Part shown: positions 492 to 29,349 of the stretch, piece after piece
Position numbering within the stretch: the first letter of the stretch is position 1
Layout of the letters: each line of letters begins with the position of its first letter
IMG/VR virus record: IMGVR_UViG_3300023174_002543
Span: 186,001-250,000 of that record
DNA: 64,000 nucleotides
Direction: 5' to 3' (one strand)
Made by a program: the position numbers and the translations under genes
Notes under the pieces: model-generated
The model's database searches: none
What the model was told of the DNA's origin: nothing
Seen by the model: the letters and a program-made list of their open reading frames with translations, nothing else

Positions 492-815
492 CTAAACGCT
501 AAATGAACTTCCGCATCCACATGTACTTACCGTATTGGGATTGCTTATCTTAAATTCCGACCCCATTAAGTCCTCTGTATAATCAATTTCCGCGCCTTGC
601 ACATATTGAGCCGACATTGAGTCAACCAGGACACTTGTGGAACCTATCTCAAATTCAAAGTCATCTTCGTTTTTCATTTCATCTAGTGTAAAGCCATAAC
701 TAAATCCAGCACATCCTCCACCTTGCACAAACATACGTAGTTTGAGATCAGGATTGTTTTCCTCTGCTAAAATATCTGCTATCTTAACTTGTGCTGATTG
801 TGTTATTGTTATCAT
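492..815 (-). CDS. erpA: A-type Fe-S carrier (ErpA/IscA/HesB family)
   Basis: GGGCAGFSY and C-terminal TCGCGSSF motifs. Confidence 0.93.
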
Positions 816-1357
816 ATATATCCTCTTACTTTATCAAAGAAACTTGGTTTATTTACTTCTGGACCTTTTACGTCACCATGACGTTTATGTTGGCTAGCAT
901 AATCATAGTACTTACCAACAACATCAAATCCTGGTTTAAAGAATATAGCTGCGGGTGGTCTGCTCATACGTAACATACCTACACGTTCTTTACCTTCTGG
1001 TGCAGTAACAATACCCTTTGTATTGTAGTCAACTTTTTGCAACCATGCATTGGGTTTTAACTTCACAAGCCAGACGTATGGATGCTCCCCGGCAAACAAA
1101 CTATCTGCATTAATATATTCTTTTAAGGGATAGAACCAAAGAGCCGGACGTCCCTTCCCTGCACCGATATAGTCTACACTAAAGTCAGGATCTTCTAGGT
1201 CGGGACTACGACCAAACTTTTGTTTTGCACTGAATGCTAATTGGTCCAATCTAGTGAAACGCACAAAGTATTCACCAGAACCATGTTTACGTACATCACG
1301 CATAATTTGATCCTTGATGCTGACCTTGGCTTCAGTAATAAATTCAGTAGCTCTCAT
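812..1357 (-). CDS. Putative capsid-packaged protein with [10 protein letters not shown] leader; function unknown
   Basis: Leader shared with the next two genes; single domain of about 170 aa. Confidence 0.6.
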
Positions 1358-1361
1358 TATT

Positions 1362-2948
1362 TTATTTCTTTATAGGTTTCCAATGGAATATAATCATACC
1401 CATATTAGGATATTCTTCATGTTGCCATTTTGGTCCTAATATATTCTGAATTACTGGGACGAAATATTTACGATACAAACTAGCACGGTTATCGCCTTTG
1501 GCAGTAAATGATATAGCCGGCGGCCGAGCCTTAGCCATGTATTCAGGCAACTGCTTTTTAACAATATTGAGAACTGTGCTTAATATCTTAATCGTTGATT
1601 TACTAGCCGAAGTAGGCATCTCGGGTGCATCATAATCTCCATTCACTGTAAACGTAATATGTAATGTGTCATTAAATTCACTACGGTCAAAGAATACATC
1701 TACCCAATGATTATCTACTGTAGAATGAAATAGGCTGCGCTTTCTTTTGTTATTGGGTTTATATTCACTAGGACTATCACCTAATTCAGTAAGTTGTTTT
1801 TGTGGTTTGATACGTGTTAATGTATAGATCGCGGCACTGGGATAATCTTTTCTTGTCAAATCGTAACCGGTACCAGTGATATATCTTTGAAGCATTCTAT
1901 CATACAGTCTAGCTCTACTGCCTGTAGGGTCATCATCTTTTTCTGCACTGAAATTCAACATCACCGGTTTACGCTTGGCAATGAATTGTTGCATGGCAGT
2001 CAACACAGTGGCAAACACACGCGGAGCATCGCCTTCTCCGGTGATCTCCATGTTTTCATCACGCTCAAACTCCACCATCCAGCTGTTGTCGCCCTGGGCC
2101 ATGAACAGTACAACTAATTCACTGCCGTCATCTAAGTCGGATGTAGCATGCCAGTCACCATTTGTTTTTTCCCAATGAACATTATAAGGTTGGTTAAAGG
2201 CTTCTAGTATACCTTGTTCTTTAAGTTGCGGTATCGGAACATATGCTAGTATATCTTTTTTATTCATTAACTCGGCAGCGGCCCATGCTCTATGTGTACC
2301 ATCTAATATATAACCTCTTGTATCTATAACAATAGGTCTCTTGTCTATATGATGCATACTATATTCACCTGCATGTCTAAAGTCTACAAATCTGCCACGA
2401 CCGTATGGATCATATGTATCAGGTTCTTGTTCTGCATCATCATACTCTTGGTCAGGTATATGTAGACTAGATAAAGGAACACGCTTCAATTGATATTGCG
2501 GATGACGCATTATTAATCTCTTTAAGAATCCACCACCTTGTTGGTCTTTAGGATGTATATCACCTACATAATTCCATACTTCTATATTGGATACAACATT
2601 AGAATTTGTTTCTTCCCAAACACGAACTTCTTCTCCACGGTGTTTATTCCAGAAACCTGCACCTGCATCAGTTTGGTCATAACTTCTAACAATCTTATAG
2701 CCAAGTTTTTTGATATAATCATACATCACTTTAGCAATACCTTGACCTTGATATTTTTCATTAACCCACAGGTCTTGTGGATCTAGCTCTTTGTCATCAC
2801 CCATATAGAATGTAACATGACCTAATACGTTATTACCCCAGTCATCAAGGGCATCAACCATTAACTCATAGTCATTCTTGGTTACTTTTAGTGTTATGCC
2901 TTCGTAGTCTACTAGTTTGGCTTCTGTTATAAATTCACTTGCTCTCAT
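1362..2948 (-). CDS. Multi-domain putative internal head protein: GNAT-like, ParB/Srx-like and two copies of a repeated ~130-aa domain
   Basis: MRASEFITEA leader. GNAT motif A (VNEKYQGQGIA...QTDAGAGFW). ParB motif (PIVID...ILDGTHRAWAA). Linkers VWEE, QGILEA and QLTE. Confidence 0.7.
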   Translation of the reverse strand: MRASEFITEAKLVDYEGITLKVTKNDYELMVDALDDWGNNVLGHVTFYMGDDKELDPQDLWVNEKYQGQGIAKVMYDYIKKLGYKIVRSYDQTDAGAGFWNKHRGEEVRVWEETNSNVVSNIEVWNYVGDIHPKDQQGGGFLKRLIMRHPQYQLKRVPLSSLHIPDQEYDDAEQEPDTYDPYGRGRFVDFRHAGEYSMHHIDKRPIVIDTRGYILDGTHRAWAAAELMNKKDILAYVPIPQLKEQGILEAFNQPYNVHWEKTNGDWHATSDLDDGSELVVLFMAQGDNSWMVEFERDENMEITGEGDAPRVFATVLTAMQQFIAKRKPVMLNFSAEKDDDPTGSRARLYDRMLQRYITGTGYDLTRKDYPSAAIYTLTRIKPQKQLTELGDSPSEYKPNNKRKRSLFHSTVDNHWVDVFFDRSEFNDTLHITFTVNGDYDAPEMPTSASKSTIKILSTVLNIVKKQLPEYMAKARPPAISFTAKGDNRASLYRKYFVPVIQNILGPKWQHEEYPNMGMIIFHWKPIKK

Positions 2949-4894
2949 AGTACTGCCAAATATTCTTTAAATTTATTGTGTCTATCTTGTAGTCCACTTA
3001 GACCGGGATTGATTGCATTGGTTACTTCTTTTGTGTTGCTAAAATTACTAACATTGGGTCTAACTTGATTCTTCCAGAACCATAGTGCAATTTGAGCACC
3101 TACATCTAGATTACTAGCCAGGTCGGGGTTTTTTACCAATCTATCATCTCCGAATATTTGCTTGCTTGCTCGGGTATAATTGTCACGTCCAGTCAACTGA
3201 ATAAAGCCACGACCTTTAAATAGTTCTCCGTCGCCTTTTACTTTGTTACCTAATTGTCTTGCCTTGCGCGGAGCTTCATATTTGGCAAATCTTTTTTTAT
3301 TGCCCACTTCCTTCATCTTACCAAAGTCCCAACTCTCATGCCGAGTCTGAGCCATGAATTGTGCCAGTTCTACTCCATTGAGTCCTGCGGCTTTAGCAGC
3401 AGTTTGTAGTGCAGCTTCAGCATCACTATTGTCACTTAATAATGTTACACCTTTTTCTTCTTCTTTGTCATCACGTGAAAACTTTGGAATCATTGATGTA
3501 AGTTTATCTTTAAATGAAGTTGTTGGTTGTGCAACTGGTTGTGCAACTTTAGTAGGCTCTTGCTTAAGAGTAGGCTTTACAGTAGCGGGCATTTTACTAA
3601 TAGGTTTAGAATAATCAGGTACTATAACTTTTTGTCCTATTTCTAACTTAGTATTACGACCCATCTTGTTGAGTTTGTATATCTCTAATGGATTTACATT
3701 GTTTTGTCTTGCTATACTGTAAACGGTATCTCCGGGTTCAACTATTTGTTGAACCATTTGAGGAGCCTTTGCATTAGCACCCATTGCCATCGCACCTGCC
3801 ATAGCACCTGTTGCTAGTGCAGATTTCCAATCTTCTTCTAACTCATTTTCTGTTACACCTTGCTTACTTTCATTCATACCCTCTGCACCATAATGAGCAA
3901 TTTTACCTGCTTTGTGCATGTTTTTTACTTGTTTGAATACTTTATCTAAATCATCAGTAACACGGACTATCCACCCTTGACTAGCGATATATTTAAATGG
4001 ATCACCGATGGGCATTTGTTTAATAGGCTTACTAGGATTTTCACTAAACCATTCACCTGTTGGTAATTGTCTGAAATCGCCAGCATCAAACACAGTTAAG
4101 TAAGTTTTACGACTACGCATTGCTGGCAAATCTTTTTGGTCAAAATAAACAATAGGTTGACCGTTTTGCGTAAACTCTACATAGCGTGTTTCATGTGCAT
4201 TGCCTGTAGCGTACAGTGCTGTTCTACGCGGATCACCGGCAAACAATCCTTTAGTAGTGTTAGTTTTAAGATTTTTGTTTTTCCAATAACTATCGTCACC
4301 TGTATCTAAACCACTCTGACTCCAATCATCCGTATGCTTGTATGCTTTGAGGCCAGACACAAAATCTGTGACAGGTTTAGAATCAATTCGTGTTACTGTT
4401 GCACCTTCCGCCACACCTTGTTTTAATCTACTCAATTCATATATAACTAAATCACCATTATCTGCACGAAAAGCCCTATAACCCCAGGCTTTGGCATAAC
4501 GAATCACCAGTCTGTCATACAACTTGGCACGACTCTCAGGATTTGGTTGAGGCTGGTCAGGCTCATAATATATTGTTGGATCAGTTGCTTTAATAGCTGA
4601 AAAACTCAATCTTGAAGGTTTGTATTTTTTGATGTATTTTTGTATAGCGTTTAACACCGTGGCAAAGATACGCTGTGCATCACCTTCGCCTGTGACTTCT
4701 TGGCTGTTGTTTCTATAAAATTCAACCTGCACTACTTCTTTGCCTTCGTCATCTTGTTGATTGTTGAACATGATGCTTAAATTTGTTCCGTCGGGCAATT
4801 TTGTGTTTAAATCAACGTCACCGTAATCGCTTTTTTCCCATTTGCCTTTATAGGGTTGGTCAAAGGCCTCTGTTATAAATTCACTTGCTCTCAT
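2945..4894 (-). CDS. Multi-domain virion-associated protein: repeated domain, unknown domain, LysM and GH19 lysozyme/chitinase
   Basis: Start moved to MRASEFITEA (ATGA overlap with the sod stop). LysM: VEPGDTVYSIARQNNV. GH19: AQTRHES, GRGFIQLTGRDNY, INPG. Linkers QGVAEG and QGVTEN. Confidence 0.8.
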   Translation of the reverse strand: MRASEFITEAFDQPYKGKWEKSDYGDVDLNTKLPDGTNLSIMFNNQQDDEGKEVVQVEFYRNNSQEVTGEGDAQRIFATVLNAIQKYIKKYKPSRLSFSAIKATDPTIYYEPDQPQPNPESRAKLYDRLVIRYAKAWGYRAFRADNGDLVIYELSRLKQGVAEGATVTRIDSKPVTDFVSGLKAYKHTDDWSQSGLDTGDDSYWKNKNLKTNTTKGLFAGDPRRTALYATGNAHETRYVEFTQNGQPIVYFDQKDLPAMRSRKTYLTVFDAGDFRQLPTGEWFSENPSKPIKQMPIGDPFKYIASQGWIVRVTDDLDKVFKQVKNMHKAGKIAHYGAEGMNESKQGVTENELEEDWKSALATGAMAGAMAMGANAKAPQMVQQIVEPGDTVYSIARQNNVNPLEIYKLNKMGRNTKLEIGQKVIVPDYSKPISKMPATVKPTLKQEPTKVAQPVAQPTTSFKDKLTSMIPKFSRDDKEEEKGVTLLSDNSDAEAALQTAAKAAGLNGVELAQFMAQTRHESWDFGKMKEVGNKKRFAKYEAPRKARQLGNKVKGDGELFKGRGFIQLTGRDNYTRASKQIFGDDRLVKNPDLASNLDVGAQIALWFWKNQVRPNVSNFSNTKEVTNAINPGLSGLQDRHNKFKEYLAVL

Positions 4895-5445
4895 AGACTC
4901 TTGCCCCAACGTGTATTGATGACATTCCAGTTTATGATCTTCCATTGTTCACGCAAATACTTCTTTTTATCGGCTCCGTAGTCAAGTGTCCAGGCATGTT
5001 CCCACCAATCAATTAATAACAATATATCATTACGAACTTCATGGTTTTTGATTGTTTTGAGTTTGCCATCACTTGCTAGATAAATCCAACCACTACCCTG
5101 TATAGTCATAGCCTCAGTCTCAATACTATCTTTGAGACCGTCGTAACTTCCATAATGCTTGTTTATAAATCCAAGCATAGGGCCGTTGGGCTTGTTATTG
5201 TTGCGTACCTCACGGAACTGAGGGAACAGAGTATTGTGTAGGAAAGCACCTGCGTAGTTAAATTCTTTATCACCTTCACCCTTGTTATATCTATCAGCAT
5301 ATCCATGTGCTAGTTTACCAAAGTGCAAGTCTAAGGCACCGGCACTGAATACAGGCTTTACATCCTTATATTCAAAATTTAACGGAATGATTTCTATATC
5401 TTGAGGCTTGTTTTTATCCTCAAGAAGGCTGATTATATCTCGCAT
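4891..5445 (-). CDS. sod: Fe/Mn superoxide dismutase
   Basis: LHFGK..HGY, FLHN, QGSGW and DWWEHAW motifs; the H/H/D/H metal ligands are present. Confidence 0.9.
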   Translation of the reverse strand: MRDIISLLEDKNKPQDIEIIPLNFEYKDVKPVFSAGALDLHFGKLAHGYADRYNKGEGDKEFNYAGAFLHNTLFPQFREVRNNNKPNGPMLGFINKHYGSYDGLKDSIETEAMTIQGSGWIYLASDGKLKTIKNHEVRNDILLLIDWWEHAWTLDYGADKKKYLREQWKIINWNVINTRWGKSL

Positions 5446-5476: not shown

Positions 5477-7816
5477 TCAGAAGCGTACTGCTAATTGAAT
5501 TTGTGCTATATCAGCAACGACTCCATTTTGTCTTTGTTGACCTATTTTTAGTATCATAGTAGAGTTGTTTTGTGCGTTATACATCAATGTTCCGTAAGCA
5601 GTAGATAGATTTTTATTGTTTTGTGCTACTTCCCCGGATACTGCCCAATTTTGATTAAATTGGTGTTCATAGCGCATTCCATACTCTGTAGTATCAACTG
5701 TTTGCTTTAGGTTAGTATAGTCAACTGCTGTTAGTGAAGAACCAGTTTCCATAACATAGTCACGTGAATTATGTTCTTTTCTAGCACCAACGAAAGGTCT
5801 GAATCCCTTCATAGCAGGGGTATATACACGCAAATGCGCCCAGGTATCCTGACCATGTGTATTAGCATTGTTACTCATACTTAATTCAGGTAATGTATGG
5901 AATGTATTATAAGTATTTTTGGATTGTCCTACATCAGTTTTAAATATCCAATCATTATGTACATATAGGTTATAGATAGTAAGTGCTTCTTTGTATAAAC
6001 TACCGCCACTGTTAGTGCCATCTAATACAGTGCTTATTCGGTTGTATTGTAAACCTAACAATGAAGAACGACTAATTCTATGCTCTGCACCAAATGTATC
6101 TATTGTTGCAGTATAACTATACCCATCTGATAAGTTAGACTTTGTTTTTGAACCATGTATATAAATGTTAATATCACGGTCATCAAAACTACGGTTAGAG
6201 ATTCTATCGTCTTTAACTAAGTTTCTACTTAATGGATCACTTAATAAACTATAGTTGATTCTAGTATTGGTTTCAGATAGTTTATCCATTTGGTCAATGC
6301 GTGTAGTATAGTTTTGATCCGTTGAGGTAATCTGAACATCATCTACAATAGTTGTAGTTGTTGTCACATCATTTCTTGTAGTAACTACGGTTACAGGAGT
6401 ATCTGTTGTAGTAGTTGTTGTACCATCACTCCAAGTAGTAACTGAAGTAGGAGTTGTAACGGTAGTTATAGTTACCGGTGTTGTATTAGTAACCACAGTA
6501 GTTACAGGTGTTGTACTAGTTAGTGTGGTAGTACGAATGATATTGAGTTCTCTTACACCACGCTCACCTCTAGTATTAGCATATGTAGTAACATCAACGG
6601 TTGAACCCCTTGTTATATTACTTGTTGTTACTGTTGTACCTGGTGTTTCTGTTACTACAACCGATGATGTGCCCGGTGTAGTACTGACTACTGTAGGTGC
6701 AGGTGTAGACATACTGCTTACAGAGCCTGCGGTTCCTGGATTAGCAATAGAACCAACTAATGTACTTGTGCTGGTTGATGTGTTATTACTATCATAGTAA
6801 TAGGTAACTTCACCTATCTGTACGCTATCACATGCTAATGTACCTAATGCTGATTGACAACCTGATATTGAACCATACGTATCAATAGCCTTAATGCTAG
6901 GGAATGTTATAAAGTAATAAACATATGGATTATTATTATTAATAGTAATCATACTTGTTTGAGTATAACGACCGCTGACATTTTCTAATGTTGTACTTTG
7001 ATTTGCAGTAATCTCAGTCCAAGTACGACCATCATTACTACCATACAAGGTAAACTTAGTAGGATCTCTTGGTACAAAGTCGTTAGCAGTAGTAAATTTA
7101 ATACCATTGATGACTTTACCTGCATTCAATGTAATTGTAAATCCTGCATTAGCACGGTCAAAGTTTAAATATTTCGTACCACTACTTCCGTCAACTGCCT
7201 TAGTTGCACCTTCACCACTTGGACTATTACTACTTGTAGGAGTAACAGTACTGATAATGCTACTTGTAACTGCTGTATAGTTTACAGTAGGTGCAACAGT
7301 TTGTCCTGCGGCTAATGGAGTAGTTGAACCACCTACACTCAATGCATTAACTTGTGATAATGTTGGATTGCGTGTTCCAGTCCATGACAACCCACTAGTG
7401 TTAGCAAAACCTTGTGTCATACTAAACAACTGACCGGTGTTGTTATCATTGCCCACAAAGAAGAAATAGTCTGTGCCCATATTAATAATATGCCCAGTGC
7501 CCATTACTGCTTTTTGAACGCCTGCTGAATTATATTGAATAGCATTGTATGGATTTGTGCTGTTACCTGTAGCTACAAATTTAATATAGTCTCCGGAAGA
7601 CCAACTTAGTTGACCACTTGTCCATGGAATCTTATATGCTGTTCCAGGATTTTTACTATAGATTTGACAAGTGGTCGTATTCATACAAGCATTAACATTC
7701 CACTGACTATCTGCTATCTGTGCTTGACCAAATTGTAAATCTGTAAAATCTGCACTTGCATTTACGCTCATGGCGGTAAGCAGAGCCATAATGGCTCCCT
7801 TTAAAAATCTTATCAT
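5477..7816 (-). CDS. Autotransporter-like outer-membrane protein: signal peptide, F5/8 type C (discoidin)-like domain, Thr-rich stalk, C-terminal beta-barrel
   Basis: Signal peptide ending ASA. Discoidin pattern AVDGSSGTK...RDPTKFTLYGSNDGRTW. Alternating beta-strand C-terminus ending in Phe (QLAVRF). Confidence 0.7.
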   Translation of the reverse strand: MIRFLKGAIMALLTAMSVNASADFTDLQFGQAQIADSQWNVNACMNTTTCQIYSKNPGTAYKIPWTSGQLSWSSGDYIKFVATGNSTNPYNAIQYNSAGVQKAVMGTGHIINMGTDYFFFVGNDNNTGQLFSMTQGFANTSGLSWTGTRNPTLSQVNALSVGGSTTPLAAGQTVAPTVNYTAVTSSIISTVTPTSSNSPSGEGATKAVDGSSGTKYLNFDRANAGFTITLNAGKVINGIKFTTANDFVPRDPTKFTLYGSNDGRTWTEITANQSTTLENVSGRYTQTSMITINNNNPYVYYFITFPSIKAIDTYGSISGCQSALGTLACDSVQIGEVTYYYDSNNTSTSTSTLVGSIANPGTAGSVSSMSTPAPTVVSTTPGTSSVVVTETPGTTVTTSNITRGSTVDVTTYANTRGERGVRELNIIRTTTLTSTTPVTTVVTNTTPVTITTVTTPTSVTTWSDGTTTTTTDTPVTVVTTRNDVTTTTTIVDDVQITSTDQNYTTRIDQMDKLSETNTRINYSLLSDPLSRNLVKDDRISNRSFDDRDINIYIHGSKTKSNLSDGYSYTATIDTFGAEHRISRSSLLGLQYNRISTVLDGTNSGGSLYKEALTIYNLYVHNDWIFKTDVGQSKNTYNTFHTLPELSMSNNANTHGQDTWAHLRVYTPAMKGFRPFVGARKEHNSRDYVMETGSSLTAVDYTNLKQTVDTTEYGMRYEHQFNQNWAVSGEVAQNNKNLSTAYGTLMYNAQNNSTMILKIGQQRQNGVVADIAQIQLAVRF

Positions 7817-8834: not shown

Positions 8835-9050
8835 TTAACGTCTACGGGTAATTCTGCCCTTAGATAAATCATAGGGGCTAAACTCTACCTCTACAGTATC
8901 GCCTAATAATATCTTAATATCGTGCTTACGCATTCTACCACTAATATAGCCCATTATGATATTACTACCGGGCATCTCTATCCTAAACATAGCGTTGGGT
9001 AATACTTCTACTACCTTCCCGTCTAGTTTAATACCTTCTTCTTTTGCCAT
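8835..9050 (-). CDS. infA: Translation initiation factor IF-1
   Basis: 71 aa; G.VVE.LPNAMF, ISGRMRK..I.IL.GD.V.VE.SPYDL.KGRI. Confidence 0.96.
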
Positions 9051-22408: not shown

Positions 22409-24340
22409 TTATTTAGATTCTTTTACCTCTGCATCAACCACTGTTGACTCATCAACGGGTTTTGCAGTTTCTTCTGTAGTAGCAGTTGGATTTGCTGCCT
22501 CTTCAGCCTTCTTCTTGGCTTCTTCTTCCTCATACTTAAACTTAGTAATTGGACCGATAGCCTCGTATAACTTAGGAATACTATCTTGGATTGCTTTAGG
22601 ATCATCACCTTCCATAGCAGTTTCAACAGCCTTAATAGCTTCGTCTGCTTTGTTGCGTTCTTCTTCGGTGACCTTATCCTTATAAGCCTCAAAGTCTTTC
22701 TTAAAGCCAAACAATGTACCTTCAGCACTATTACGTGCTTGTACTAATTCAACATGTTTCTTATCGGCTTCAGCATTCAACTCACCATCTTTAACCATTT
22801 GTTGAATTTCTGCTTCACTTAATCCTGAATTAGCCTTGATAGTGATTTTGTTCTCTTTACCAGTACCTTTGTCCTTAGCGGACACTTTGAGAATACCGTT
22901 AGCATCAATATCTAATGTAACTTCAATCTGTGGTTGACCACGTGGTGCTGGTGGAATGTCACCCAAACTAAACTCACCCAATACTTTATTATATTGGAAT
23001 AGTTCACGTTCACCTTGACCTACTTTAATAGTAACTGCCGGCTGATTGTCATCCGCAGTACTAAAAGTTTGTGAATGTTTAGTTGGGATAGTTGTATTCT
23101 TGTTAATCAATTTAGTGAATACACCACCGACTGTTTCGATACCAAGACTCAATGGAGTAACGTCAAGTAATAGAACGTCACTACGGCCACCACTCAATAC
23201 ATCACCCTGAATAGCAGCACCTGCGGCAACTGCTTCGTCTGGGTTAACATCTTTGCGTGGTGCCTTGCCGAATAATGATTCAACAACTTCTTGCACCTTA
23301 GGCATACGTGTCATACCGCCAACTAAGATAACTTCATCAATGTCACCTGCACTAACATTAGCATCTTGCATAGCCTGACGACATGGAGCCAAACTACGTT
23401 GGATTAACTCGTCAACCAATTGTTCTAATTTAGAACGTGATAGTTTAACGTTCATGTGCTTAGGACCATTTGCATCGGCTGTAATATATGGCAAGTTAAC
23501 ATCTGTTTGTGCTGAACTTGATAATTCAATCTTAGCCTTTTCTGCGGCTTCTTTTAGTCGTTGTAGTGCCAACACATCTTTACTTAAATCAACTCCGTTG
23601 TCTTTCTTAAACTCATCAATTAAGAAATCCATAATACGTTGGTCAAAGTCTTCACCACCTAAGAATGTATCACCGTTCGTAGACAATACTTCGATTTGTT
23701 TGTCACCGTCAACATCTGCTAATTCAATGATAGATACGTCAAATGTACCACCACCTAAGTCATAGACTGCAATTTTACGGTCACGTTTTTCTTGTTTATC
23801 AACACCATATGCTAGTGCGGCCGCTGTTGGCTCGTTAATAATACGCAATACTTCTAAGCCTGCAATTTTACCTGCATCCTTAGTTGCTTGACGTTGACTA
23901 TCGTTAAAGTAAGCAGGAACTGTAATAACTGCTTGGGTTACATCATGTCCAAGATAGTCTTCGGCAGTCTTTTTCATCTTGCGTAGTACTTCGGCACTAA
24001 TTTGCGGGGGTGCTAACTTTTCATCATTAACTTGTACCCATGCATCACCGTTATCGTTCTGTACGATTTTGTATGGCATTAGGTCAATATCTTTTTGCAC
24101 AGCCTGTTCATTAAACTTACGTCCAATTAAACGTTTGCTTGCATAGATTGTGTTCTTTGGATTTGTAACTGCTTGGCGTTTGGCGCTTGCACCAACCAAG
24201 ATTTCATCGTTTGCGTAGGCAACGATTGAGGGTGTAGTTCTAGCACCTTCTGAATTTTCAATTACTTTGGGGATTCCGTTTTCGATAACGGCTACGCATG
24301 AATTTGTGGTACCCAAATCGATACCGATGACTTTGCTCAT
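22409..24340 (-). CDS. dnaK: Hsp70 chaperone DnaK
   Basis: Full length; [25 protein letters not shown] and [13 protein letters not shown] motifs. Confidence 0.98.
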
Positions 24341-27549: not shown

Positions 27550-29349
27550 TTAGATGGTATTTTTGTCTTCTTTTATGTATTGGGCAATTGCGTCTTGTTC
27601 AGCAGGAGTCAAATGATCCGGATCATATTCTCCGCTAGCAATTTTCTCAATTAAATGTTGGATATAACCATCTTCAGATAGATGACTATCAGTATTTTCA
27701 CGGTTTACTTCTATCCATTTTCTACCGTTAAATTTAAAAATTCTATGCGGAATAACATCAATACGGGTAAACATATCACCTAAAGCTGGTACTTTGGGAA
27801 AATTATCACCGAATGTAACGTTTGGTTCAGTAGGATCATCAACTTTTAATTTTAAATCATTGACAAGATGTAAGTCGGGGCGCAAATCAGAGAGAACACT
27901 TTTATGCATTCTTTTCCCACCGTATACTATGTAATCGCCGGGACTGTCTTTTAGTAGATTACTTAACTCAATGTCTTCTTCTTTTGGAGCTTCAAAAGCA
28001 GGTCCTGTTTGTACCCATTCGCCTGTTGTTAAATCTTTAAAGCCTTCAAAGTTAGGTGTATCATCCTTTTTAACTTCTGGTTCCTCTATTTGCTCACGTA
28101 TAGTCATAGTGTGTTGCTTTAAGAAACCTACAGATACTGAATCATCCTCTTTAGTTGTAATAACTGGGTCTGTATAATCTGGTTCGTGATCCTCTTCTAC
28201 AAACTTGTATTCAATATCAATTGCAGGTGTTTTAGACGTAACAGGTTCTTCTACCTTTTCTTCAACTACAGGAATGTTGTCAGCAGGATTTGAGTTAGTG
28301 ACTACCAGTTGAATAGGTTCAGAACCATCAAAGGGCCCATCTAATACATCACACTCTTTATTTGGACAGAATAATCCAATGCCAGGTGCCTTAACAAGAG
28401 GAGTATTGCAAATATGGCAATTAATTGGATCATCTAATTCTTTAACTACATCTTCATCTATCGGAAATAATTCGTCTTTGTTAGTAAGTTCACCTGTTGG
28501 TAAATCTTCTTTGGCACGTTCACGTAATGCCGCTAGTGCTTCCTCATTAATTGGACCGTCATCTTGTTCGTATTTGTGTTTGTCTTCTTTTTCTTCTTTA
28601 AGCCAACCAAATGTCATTTGAGCCGCTAATAGCATAACAATTGCTAACGGGTCAAACACAATAACAATAAGAATAATAACCCAAGTTACTGCACGTTCTA
28701 ACACATTAGTATCAGGGTTGTCACCATAGACAAATGCCGCTATGTACTTGATTGGCCCTACTTCTGCTTCAACCTTACGAACCTCGGCTGCGATGGGTGC
28801 CCTTTCTTCGCTAAGGGCGGCAACAGTTTTCTGTTCGGTCGCAATCTCAGATTGAAGGCGGACACGTTCTTTTTGCTGTGCTCTTCGGATTTGAACAGCT
28901 TTCTCGGCACCTTTTTCATCATTGCTTCGACCCATAACTTGGTCCACAGCCTCATCCATTTGTTTAAGCGCCTTCCGGTTCGCATCTATGTTGTCCTTTG
29001 CTGTTTTGATTTTTTCGTCATATACTGCAATCTTACTTTGTACATCACCACTTACTAATGTTTGGTCACTATGTGCTTTGCTTAAAAAACCAAAAATACC
29101 TAAACTAGTAATAACCATTAAAATAACAACGGCAATAATAGCATATGACTTCATTAAAAATGGAGCTTGTGTCCATCGTGCTTTTACCCAACTTGCAATA
29201 ACAAGTTTACCTACCTCAAGACTGATACCCATAACCATGATAGGTATTGCCGCGGCAGAGAATATCGCAACCAAACCTGCGACAGAATAATAAATGGCAA
29301 CCGCTGAAATAGTTAAGCCGGAAAGTAGGAGTAATATAGCTAGGATCAT
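27550..29349 (-). CDS. Membrane protein with four TMs, a coiled coil and an acidic C-terminal region containing a zinc ribbon
   Basis: S..A.YYS..GL, GIFGFLSKAH, EVGPIKY and FDPLA motifs typical of large myoviruses; CHIC...C...C. Confidence 0.75.
   Translation of the reverse strand: MILAILLLLSGLTISAVAIYYSVAGLVAIFSAAAIPIMVMGISLEVGKLVIASWVKARWTQAPFLMKSYAIIAVVILMVITSLGIFGFLSKAHSDQTLVSGDVQSKIAVYDEKIKTAKDNIDANRKALKQMDEAVDQVMGRSNDEKGAEKAVQIRRAQQKERVRLQSEIATEQKTVAALSEERAPIAAEVRKVEAEVGPIKYIAAFVYGDNPDTNVLERAVTWVIILIVIVFDPLAIVMLLAAQMTFGWLKEEKEDKHKYEQDDGPINEEALAALRERAKEDLPTGELTNKDELFPIDEDVVKELDDPINCHICNTPLVKAPGIGLFCPNKECDVLDGPFDGSEPIQLVVTNSNPADNIPVVEEKVEEPVTSKTPAIDIEYKFVEEDHEPDYTDPVITTKEDDSVSVGFLKQHTMTIREQIEEPEVKKDDTPNFEGFKDLTTGEWVQTGPAFEAPKEEDIELSNLLKDSPGDYIVYGGKRMHKSVLSDLRPDLHLVNDLKLKVDDPTEPNVTFGDNFPKVPALGDMFTRIDVIPHRIFKFNGRKWIEVNRENTDSHLSEDGYIQHLIEKIASGEYDPDHLTPAEQDAIAQYIKEDKNTI

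Follow-up and report, generated by a model that had tools for sequence, protein, structure and literature searches.

Two adjoining minus-strand genes, g649 (2945–4894) and g528 (1362–2948), in a 64,000-nucleotide stretch of the virus record IMGVR_UViG_3300023174_002543 (bases 186001–250000 of 367,104 bp; called here the window, with positions counted from its first base) carry between them three copies of a ~140-residue domain that belongs to the family DUF6934. We consider it probable that DUF6934 genes encode multi-part head proteins, which are cut by the head protease and injected together with the DNA. The record is complete by CheckV estimate, and a megablast of the region found no close DNA relative among GenBank phages. 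It encodes, at G000:C1 62183–62818, a Peptidase_S77 prohead protease of the T4 gp21 type (PF03420, E 3.2e-29) and a gp23-type major capsid protein (PF07068, E 1.9e-99), with a head module at 59–65 kb in the order portal, acidic protein, protease, scaffold and capsid. These genes mark the source as a jumbo phage whose head is of the T4 type.

The domain is real and repeated, as shown by the relationships among copies 1–3 and by a fourth copy elsewhere in the genome. Copies 1 (g649) and 2 (g528) are 48% identical (BLASTP E 1.6e-32), and copy 3, located behind copy 2 in g528, shares 18–28% identity with them, a similarity that pairwise BLAST detects weakly (E 0.016). A six-frame search of the genome with the Pfam profile PF22028 matches all three copies (E 3.6e-5, 1.5e-3 and 9.3e-3), copy 3 over profile positions 7–108; relative to the gathering score of 27 bits, copy 2 lies above the cut-off (31.4 bits) and copies 1 and 3 lie below it (16.5 and 14 bits). 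A profile of 89 sequences from which copy-3-type sequences had been excluded recovers copy 3 with 34.4 bits (E 1.3e-12, residues 2–111), a score reached by 0 of 1822 shuffles, the best of which gave 11.1 bits. Comparison of the copy-3 subfamily with the canonical family by hhalign gives a probability of 90% (E 1.5e-6), and comparison with a second subfamily 94.5%. The presence of three copies in two genes, proposed in an earlier sequence-only reading of this DNA, is thereby confirmed, and the mutual alignment of copy 3, which that reading had named beforehand as a test, is significant. The same reading called the domain unnamed. A Pfam name does exist (PF22028, DUF6934), as do PHROGs 6387 and 16075, but the family is indeed without a described function: the one paper in which DUF6934 is named mentions it only as a gene neighbour, in Flavobacterium.

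The fourth, diverged (type C) copy lies outside the window (G000:C1 304294–305157, minus strand) in a 278-residue protein that starts with the leader MRATEFIAE|LFQHGK and has an extra C-terminal module after VNE|S. A word-based protein search with copy 2 returned 4 matches, and a scan of 80 related viral loci was far richer. PF22028 matches 29 of the 61 relatives (E up to 5e-15). The family comprises at least five diverged subtypes, often with two or three copies per protein or genome: four genes in phage nt-1, five copies in three genes in phage Atu_ph07 and four copies in the present genome. In relatives the domain is fused to deaminase, GNAT, GH19, amidoligase, NUDIX, M48 and Pol-beta nucleotidyltransferase (NTase) partners. 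The number of subtypes, the multiple copies, these varied enzymatic fusions and the occurrence of the Atu_ph07 homologues as virion proteins support the earlier description of an amplified, diversifying cargo domain.

With copy limits drawn at the flanking x-E sites, g649, g528 and the adjoining gene g181 resolve into the following modules.

4868–4894, minus strand: leader of g649, MRASEFITE, with the predicted protease site ITE|A; the ATG overlaps the stop of a superoxide dismutase (SOD)-like gene.
4406–4867, minus strand: copy 1, DUF6934 / GNAT-like domain (AFDQPY...KQGVAE), flanked by ITE| and VAE|; 252.9 bits against the family profile, PF22028 E 1.5e-3.
3848–4405, minus strand: middle module of g649 with a DUF6886 match, ending GVTE|; PF21820 28.8 bits, above the cut-off when scanned alone.
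3761–3832, minus strand: Gly/Ala/Met-rich, weakly hydrophobic stretch of g649, DWKSALATGAMAGAMAMGANAKAP, right behind LEE|; read off the sequence.
3617–3742, minus strand: LysM peptidoglycan-binding domain of g649; PF01476 E 1.2e-9.
2948–3379, minus strand: GH19 muramidase/chitinase-type domain of g649; PF00182 E 2.3e-8, phrog_181 endolysin E 8e-31.
2922–2948, minus strand: leader of g528, MRASEFITE|A; ATGA overlap with the g649 stop.
2613–2921, minus strand: small GNAT acetyltransferase module of g528, ending VWE|; PF00583 E 2.5e-5.
2202–2612, minus strand: DGTHR-motif module of g528, possibly ParB/Srx-like, ending ILE|; Atlas leads only.
1785–2201, minus strand: copy 2, DUF6934 / GNAT-like domain (AFNQPY...KQLTE); PF22028 31.4 bits, E 2.2e-7; model confidence given below.
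1365–1784, minus strand: copy 3, diverged basic family member (isoelectric point 9.4); 34.4 bits, E 1.3e-12, with the profile built without copy 3.
812–1357, minus strand: g181, leader MRATEFITE|A and a 172-residue basic body; no Pfam or PHROG match.

Each of the two large proteins thus holds at least two distinct effector-type domains in one phage polypeptide: GNAT, ParB-like (weak) and two DUF6934 domains in g528, and DUF6934, DUF6886, LysM and GH19 in g649. For residues 113–249 of g528 the Atlas gave a feature score of 0.87 and, to ParB_N clusters, a TM score of 0.45 by query; no sequence match was found in Pfam or the PDB, and the ParB label is therefore kept at ‘possible'.

All three proteins start with MRA[ST]EFITE followed by Ala. 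The leader codons of g181 show synonymous differences from those of g528 and g649, indicating that the leader is conserved as a peptide. It recalls the internal proteins (IPs) of T4: in the T4 record, IPII and IPIII start with MKTYQEFIAE|A and the IPI propeptide ends in ITE|A. The first 10 residues of IPIII are a capsid-targeting sequence (CTS) that is enough for packaging, residues 8 and 10 of the T4 CTS govern processing by gp21, and CTS-like leaders occur on varied proteins in T4 relatives (PMC9026906). When the 80 related loci from viral contigs were searched with the leader pattern M[RK]xx[ED][FILVM][ILVFM]xE, it was present in 105 open reading frames (ORFs) on the gene strand and in 0 on the opposite strand, and all but two of these patterns (103) stood at the ORF start. 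Of the leader proteins, 76 are without a DUF6934 domain and carry GH19, LysM, amidoligase, DUF6321, GP88 or other modules. At one locus (L037, 1364–11122) the leader MRAxEF[ILV]xE heads eight genes in a row, and of the variable internal-protein loci of T4 this array is the clearest relative. The present genome has six leader carriers, the three tandem genes and three elsewhere. Outside the window, two small genes (G000:C1 345827–346231 and 350513–350917) start with the leader-like MRANEFISE|S and MKINEIINE|G and have basic bodies without an assigned family. The MRAxEF leader is missing from roughly two thirds of the ORFs that carry the domain, and most of these start with MNLKELDSFKLSDAV.FHD.LNP.LW (for example L067:4501–7017 and L066:5257–7317). 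Here MNLKELDSFKLSDAV is a second conserved N-terminus, and its first five residues (the MNLKE|L start) again form an L-x-E site.

Sites of the same kind separate the modules. In g528, ITE|A, VWE|E, ILE|A and LTE|L part the leader, the small GNAT, the DGTHR module, copy 2 and copy 3; in g649, copy 1 stands between ITE|A and VAE|G, while the hydrophobic segment, LysM and GH19 come after VTE|N and LEE|D. Among relatives, [ILVM]-x-E directly precedes 59 of 61 non-redundant canonical domain copies, with a variable middle residue, and a further such site closes the domain model in 55 of 60 copies, as against 40% expected by chance. The small GNAT module ends in V/I-W-E in most relatives, and the residues before the domain-preceding Glu are disordered in the structural model of copy 2 (predicted local distance difference test, pLDDT, <50). 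The motif marks module boundaries irrespective of the neighbouring module, which is the behaviour of a protease site; a structural cap would show it for its own domain only. In relatives of the small GNAT (for example L068, L009, L081 and L014), V-W-E is often followed by a recurring basic tail, NFADGKNP(G/Q)(R/D)KG, and the same tail stands behind a DUF6934 domain in P0004 and P0007.

Some segments would make sense as new N-termini. The DWKSALATGAMAGAMAMGANAKAP stretch of g649 is possibly a membrane or export segment; a homologue (L051:5512–7077) has a twin-arginine (Tat)-like RRGFLGG at that position, and in another leader protein (L060:3184–3801) a Pfam TAT_signal lies directly behind the leader. 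In relatives a Tat-type signal (RRGFLG) thus comes right behind the leader or behind an internal x-E site. This arrangement suggests that export or membrane insertion of the LysM–GH19 piece would be possible only after processing. An export signal that becomes N-terminal only through a protease cut would be an unusual design.

An experimental, though indirect, link to the virion comes from Agrobacterium phage Atu_ph07, a 490-kb phage that has homologues of T4 gp20, gp21 and gp23 (Table S3, PMC6102473). Its three domain proteins, of 87.07, 31.68 and 33.72 kDa computed mass, were identified as gp53, gp482 and gp483, since these masses match the published virion mass-spectrometry table (PMC6102473). 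All three are present in purified virions (31, 9 and 16 unique peptides, respectively, and 37–56% coverage), and they peak in the gel at positions well below their full lengths: gp53 in band 9, where single-band proteins are of 19–24 kDa, and gp482 and gp483 in band 12, where single-band proteins are mostly of 13–16 kDa, whereas unprocessed proteins of 31–34 kDa peak in band 7 (PMC6102473). The protein gp483 consists of two domain copies only, each starting after L-x-E. Taken together, these data fit packaging and subsequent cutting into single domains. Similarly, each of the four domain genes of the T4-like Vibrio phage nt-1 has L-x-E before the domain.

Copy 2 was folded by AlphaFold2 (AF2) using an 88-sequence alignment from related viral contigs. 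The model (pLDDT 84; predicted template modelling score, pTM, 0.81) shows four strands, a helix, a strand, a helix and two strands. In the PDB it matches the antizyme of ornithine decarboxylase and a large number of GNATs (Foldseek E 2e-4 to 1e-2), with VIA Z values of 8–9 to many GNATs and 8.7 to antizyme and TM scores of 0.35–0.5. Helices α1–α2 are absent from the model. Taken together, this points to a GNAT-like sandwich without α1–α2, as in antizyme; a fold class rather than GNAT membership is claimed, because the Z values are just above the level (8) that the tool calls common. No GNAT Pfam model matches over the domain, and the acetyl-CoA loop consensus Q/R-x-x-G-x-G/A is absent, only the G-x-G in an acidic loop being conserved. 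Homology to the small GNAT of g528 was considered and rejected at the sequence level (hhalign 1%). Conservation is highest in the G-x-G that precedes the first helix and in the R..LY of the second, with Tyr105 invariant and Gly60, Gly62, Arg101 and Leu104 nearly so; we take these to be the positions of the GNAT pyrophosphate (cofactor) loop and of the motif B tyrosine. Strong matches were obtained with predicted viral structures (TM 0.6–0.8, E down to 4e-10). They include uncharacterised proteins of Atu_ph07 (Agrobacterium), Vibrio VP-1 and Kuja, Dickeya RC-2014, Erwinia phiEa2809, Shigella MK-13 and Aeromonas phiA8-29, as well as proteins of uncultured phages whose annotation is that of a ParB/Srx or cytidine deaminase fusion.

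A likeness of the domain to the N-terminal region of T4 Alt, suggested in the sequence-only reading, holds as a distant relationship. When 13 Alt N-termini from at least 8 genera of T4-like phages were compared with a 34-sequence alignment of the superfamily, hhalign gave a probability of 91.5% (E 8.8e-7) over 139 columns, starting at L-x-E|xFD, while reversed and column-shuffled controls gave at most 1.5%. The AF2 model of the Alt N-terminus is of low confidence (pLDDT 60) and has the same order of secondary-structure elements as the domain; its Foldseek result was used only to compare neighbour lists, and its viral neighbours, after Alt orthologues, are the proteins that copy 2 retrieves. 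A word-based search with the Alt N-terminus found only near-identical Alt proteins among the 120 matches listed, from which no useful profile could be built. The protein database lists Pfam PF26846 for Alt. Cleavage of Alt itself is recorded in GenBank, where 6 residues are removed from the T4 protein, that is, after MELITE. Furthermore, the T4 annotation traces alt.-1 and alt.-2 (L085:5066–5451) to an old duplication that covered the first part of alt, so that T4 itself shows amplification of the domain. The identification of the domain as a distant relative of the Alt N-terminal domain is thus moderately supported. A connection with P1 DarA did not emerge, although no search was aimed at one. 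A Pfam scan found no ADP-ribosyltransferase (ART) domain (PF03496) in g528, g649 or g181, and the three proteins are accordingly not Alt orthologues.

In the mechanism that we propose, the nine-residue MRAxEFIxE would act like the T4 CTS and bring the precursor into the prohead core, where the gp21-type protease would cut after Glu at [ILVM]-x-E, at the leader end and at all domain junctions. In the T4 CTS, Asp at position 10 blocks cutting. Cleavage of g528 would yield GNAT, ParB-like, copy 2 and copy 3 pieces, and that of g649 would yield copy 1, a DUF6886 piece and a LysM–GH19 muralytic piece. The resulting 12–33 kDa pieces would stay in the mature head and be ejected with the DNA, and once in the new host cell the DUF6934 pieces would work as effectors in the manner of internal proteins, probably binding or acylating a host component. 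The analysis shows that the copies are homologous, to which predicted fold class they belong, that leader and junction motifs are conserved among relatives, that the protease gene is present and that homologues are associated with Atu_ph07 virions; targeting, cleavage and ejection in the present phage, as well as the activity of the domain, are steps that we infer. An effector role is favoured because the domain is kept in virions, stands alone behind the leader, occurs as several subtypes per genome and has a conserved loop-and-helix motif. Host takeover or counter-defence appears to be the most plausible purpose of the injected DUF6934 pieces. The anti-defence role envisaged in the sequence-only reading is one possibility among several: no similarity to a known anti-defence family was noticed, and no search of PADLOC or anti-defence libraries was made.

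Several observations weigh against packaging, cleavage and injection, or against the relationships on which they draw. The trio lies ~120 kb from the head module amid auxiliary genes (SOD-like, IscA-like and initiation factor IF-1) rather than structural ones, and copies 1 and 2 are by their composition acidic, unlike the basic internal proteins of T4. The motif [ILVM]-x-E is short, occurring at 1.6% of positions, and a structural function is conceivable for the Glu that precedes the domain. Processing in Atu_ph07 is read from the most abundant gel band, and degradation could explain it. As for T4, the DUF6934 family profile finds nothing in its genome (HMMER), and the link to Alt needs a deep alignment, a shallow one of 5 sequences having given 1–8%; the model of the Alt N-terminus, at pLDDT 60, adds to this reserve.

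Other explanations account for part of the evidence. The domain might be a capsid-docking or packaging adaptor that binds the scaffolding core or DNA, carries enzymes into the head and is then cut off, possibly the role of the Alt N-terminus in T4 as well. A hub domain joined to many unrelated enzymatic partners and flanked by cleavage-type sites would suit such a function, and T4 Alt, without an IP-type leader, has the domain at its N-terminus; about two thirds of the domain ORFs have no MRAxEF leader. The leaderless ORFs, however, mostly start with MNLKE|L, a short propeptide-like N-terminus, and proteins made of leader and domain only do exist (L012, L083 and P0005); because such stand-alone copies keep the leader, the domain seems insufficient for targeting, and we rank an adaptor below a cargo function for this reason. 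Atu_ph07 gp483, composed of two copies only, would have no cargo to carry, and the Atu_ph07 fragments remain in mature virions with the coverage given above, unlike expelled scaffold pieces. An adaptor is in our view distinctly improbable. The converse doubt, that nothing is packaged at all, would make g649 simply the endolysin of the phage, extended at its N-terminus; the N-terminus common to the proteins would be left over from a paralogue or would serve translation or regulation, and the x-E sites would be ordinary linker residues. The pairing of GH19 with LysM is common among endolysins, the g649 and g528 leaders hardly differ at the DNA level, which a recent duplication would explain, and the trio does not adjoin the head genes. 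Such an origin is hard to reconcile with the conservation of the leader at the protein level (synonymous changes together with changes at positions 4 and 8) in 105 ORFs of unrelated content and at N-termini only, with an export or membrane segment that lies ~350 residues in, right after x-E, and makes sense only after cleavage, or with homologues that are virion proteins of Atu_ph07; we hold it to be very improbable.

Packaging and cleavage of the DUF6934 proteins remain the explanation that we prefer, and what the injected pieces do can be put more sharply. The domain could be an active minimal acyl-CoA transferase, whose injected paralogues would modify host RNA polymerase, translation factors or defence proteins. 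Host modification by injected enzymes has precedents, Alt ADP-ribosylating and phiKMV Rac acetylating host targets. In keeping with catalysis, the fold is GNAT-like and the conserved G-x-G and R..LY occupy what we take to be the pyrophosphate-loop and motif B positions, yet there is no GNAT Pfam match and hhalign to the co-resident true GNAT gave 1%. Moreover, the substrate-site helices α1–α2 are missing, a lack shared with the non-catalytic antizyme. The acidic loop (GEGD) is atypical of phosphate binding, and its second Gly is lost in copy 3 and in the Atu_ph07 copies. An active transferase is thus possible but unlikely.

A wider and more speculative interpretation, which we put forward tentatively and think somewhat unlikely to hold in full, is that DUF6934 and the Alt N-terminus form one ancient family of GNAT-derived head-internal modules across phages with T4-type heads, ranging over Straboviridae, probably Ackermannviridae, Atu_ph07-like phages and uncultivated jumbo phages. 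The arsenal of such phages would be built as CTS-led polyproteins and unpacked by the prohead protease within the capsid into ~15 kDa pieces, some with export signals usable only after the cut, and the domain would represent a new class of injected ligand-binding or acyl-transfer effectors. If this is true, the head protease doubles as the maturase of a whole effector repertoire. Apart from this wider view, the present findings place DUF6934 in a context and give it a testable role. The same holds for the N-terminal third of T4 Alt, a part that is uncharacterised in a protein under study for decades. The findings also suggest that the capsid-targeting principle of T4 reaches uncultivated phages of 300–500 kb, in polyprotein form. 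MRAxEFIxE together with the x-E junctions provides a simple sequence rule for listing the injected proteins of such phages, and thereby a place to seek new host-takeover and counter-defence activities. Such leaders could also bring foreign proteins into the heads of jumbo phages, a use to which the T4 CTS is already put.

The genes around the trio are of mixed character. g649, g528 and g181 run head to tail on the minus strand, and ATGA start/stop overlaps join the SOD-like gene to g649 (ATG at 4894) and g649 to g528. The first of these overlaps fixes the start of g649 at 4894, where the sequence-only reading had placed it, and we propose that the three leader proteins are co-transcribed. The SOD-like gene (4891–5445, minus strand; Fe/Mn superoxide dismutase-like, Sod_Fe_C E 7.5e-22), the stop of which forms this overlap, appears to be co-transcribed with them. 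Next to it, a minus-strand gene at 5477–7816 encodes a protein of 779 residues, which opens with a sequence resembling a signal peptide, includes an F5/8 type C (discoidin) domain and a long region rich in Thr and Val, and has a C-terminal part that ends in Phe; it looks like an outer-membrane β-barrel or autotransporter, which is odd in a phage. Cellular-type genes in the window, all on the minus strand, encode an IscA/HesB-like Fe-S assembly protein (492–815), IF-1 (8835–9050) and DnaK (22409–24340). The DnaK is ~68% identical to DnaK in Pseudomonas and Acinetobacter phage or prophage records, which hints at a gammaproteobacterial host. Further along, at 27550–29349 (minus strand), a 599-residue protein shows an N-terminal Tetraspanin match below threshold (25.9 as compared with a cut-off of 32.1 bits) and a weak C-terminal match to a virion structural PHROG.

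Comparison with known systems places these proteins between several of them. At the level of the predicted fold, the domain resembles GNATs and antizyme in its β-α-β-α-β-β core, and differs from GNATs in being without α1–α2 and without a sequence match to any GNAT family. The cleavage logo of phiKZ-like phages, S/A/G-x-E, is unlike the sites described here. These phages belong to a different lineage, and a leader or domain common to both was not found; the principle is nevertheless similar, in that many of their head-internal proteins (in 201phi2-1 and SPN3US) have propeptides that are cut after Glu by a gp21-related protease before ejection (PMC9026906). The I/L-x-E|xFD start is common to the window proteins and to T4 Alt, where it is cut; Alt, however, has an ART domain and one N-terminal copy of the domain, whereas the window proteins have no ART domain and the domain is repeated and may stand anywhere in the protein.

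The closest parallels are the T4 internal proteins and the polyvalent proteins. IPI, IPII and IPIII likewise have a short N-terminal EFI-x-E|A leader on otherwise unrelated proteins, and both T4 and the present genome have such genes in variable tandem sets and encode a protease of the gp21 type together with a capsid protein of the gp23 type; the T4 proteins are packaged, trimmed and ejected, and the same fate is predicted here. The T4 proteins are single, small and basic, whereas long multi-domain precursors with internal cleavage-type sites are encoded here; the leader has 9 residues instead of the 10 in T4, the body domains are unrelated to those of the T4 proteins, and copies 1 and 2 are acidic. 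In the account of polyvalent proteins (Iyer et al. 2017, PMC5512222), which are delivered with phage or plasmid DNA, a term search found no mention of DUF6934, and the repertoire described is of the deaminase, GNAT, GH19, amidoligase, NUDIX, M48 and Pol-beta NTase type. As described there, several effector-type domains (GNAT, ParB-like, lysozyme-type, deaminase, NTase and amidoligase) are combined in one polypeptide, as they are here, and delivery is linked to DNA, with processing before or during packaging, which is also what we propose. Polyvalent proteins use an in-built MPTase peptidase, whereas a T4-type prohead protease would act at x-E sites in the present phage, the proteins of which have an N-terminal CTS-like leader in addition. 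The CTS principle, processing by gp21, Alt, polyvalent proteins and the Pfam placeholder are thus known parts. CTS-like leaders on polyproteins with protease-type sites at all module boundaries, in a large clade of mostly uncultivated jumbo phages with T4-type heads, appear to be new, as do the assignment of a fold to DUF6934, the link between this family and the Alt N-terminus and the reading of the Atu_ph07 proteome given here.

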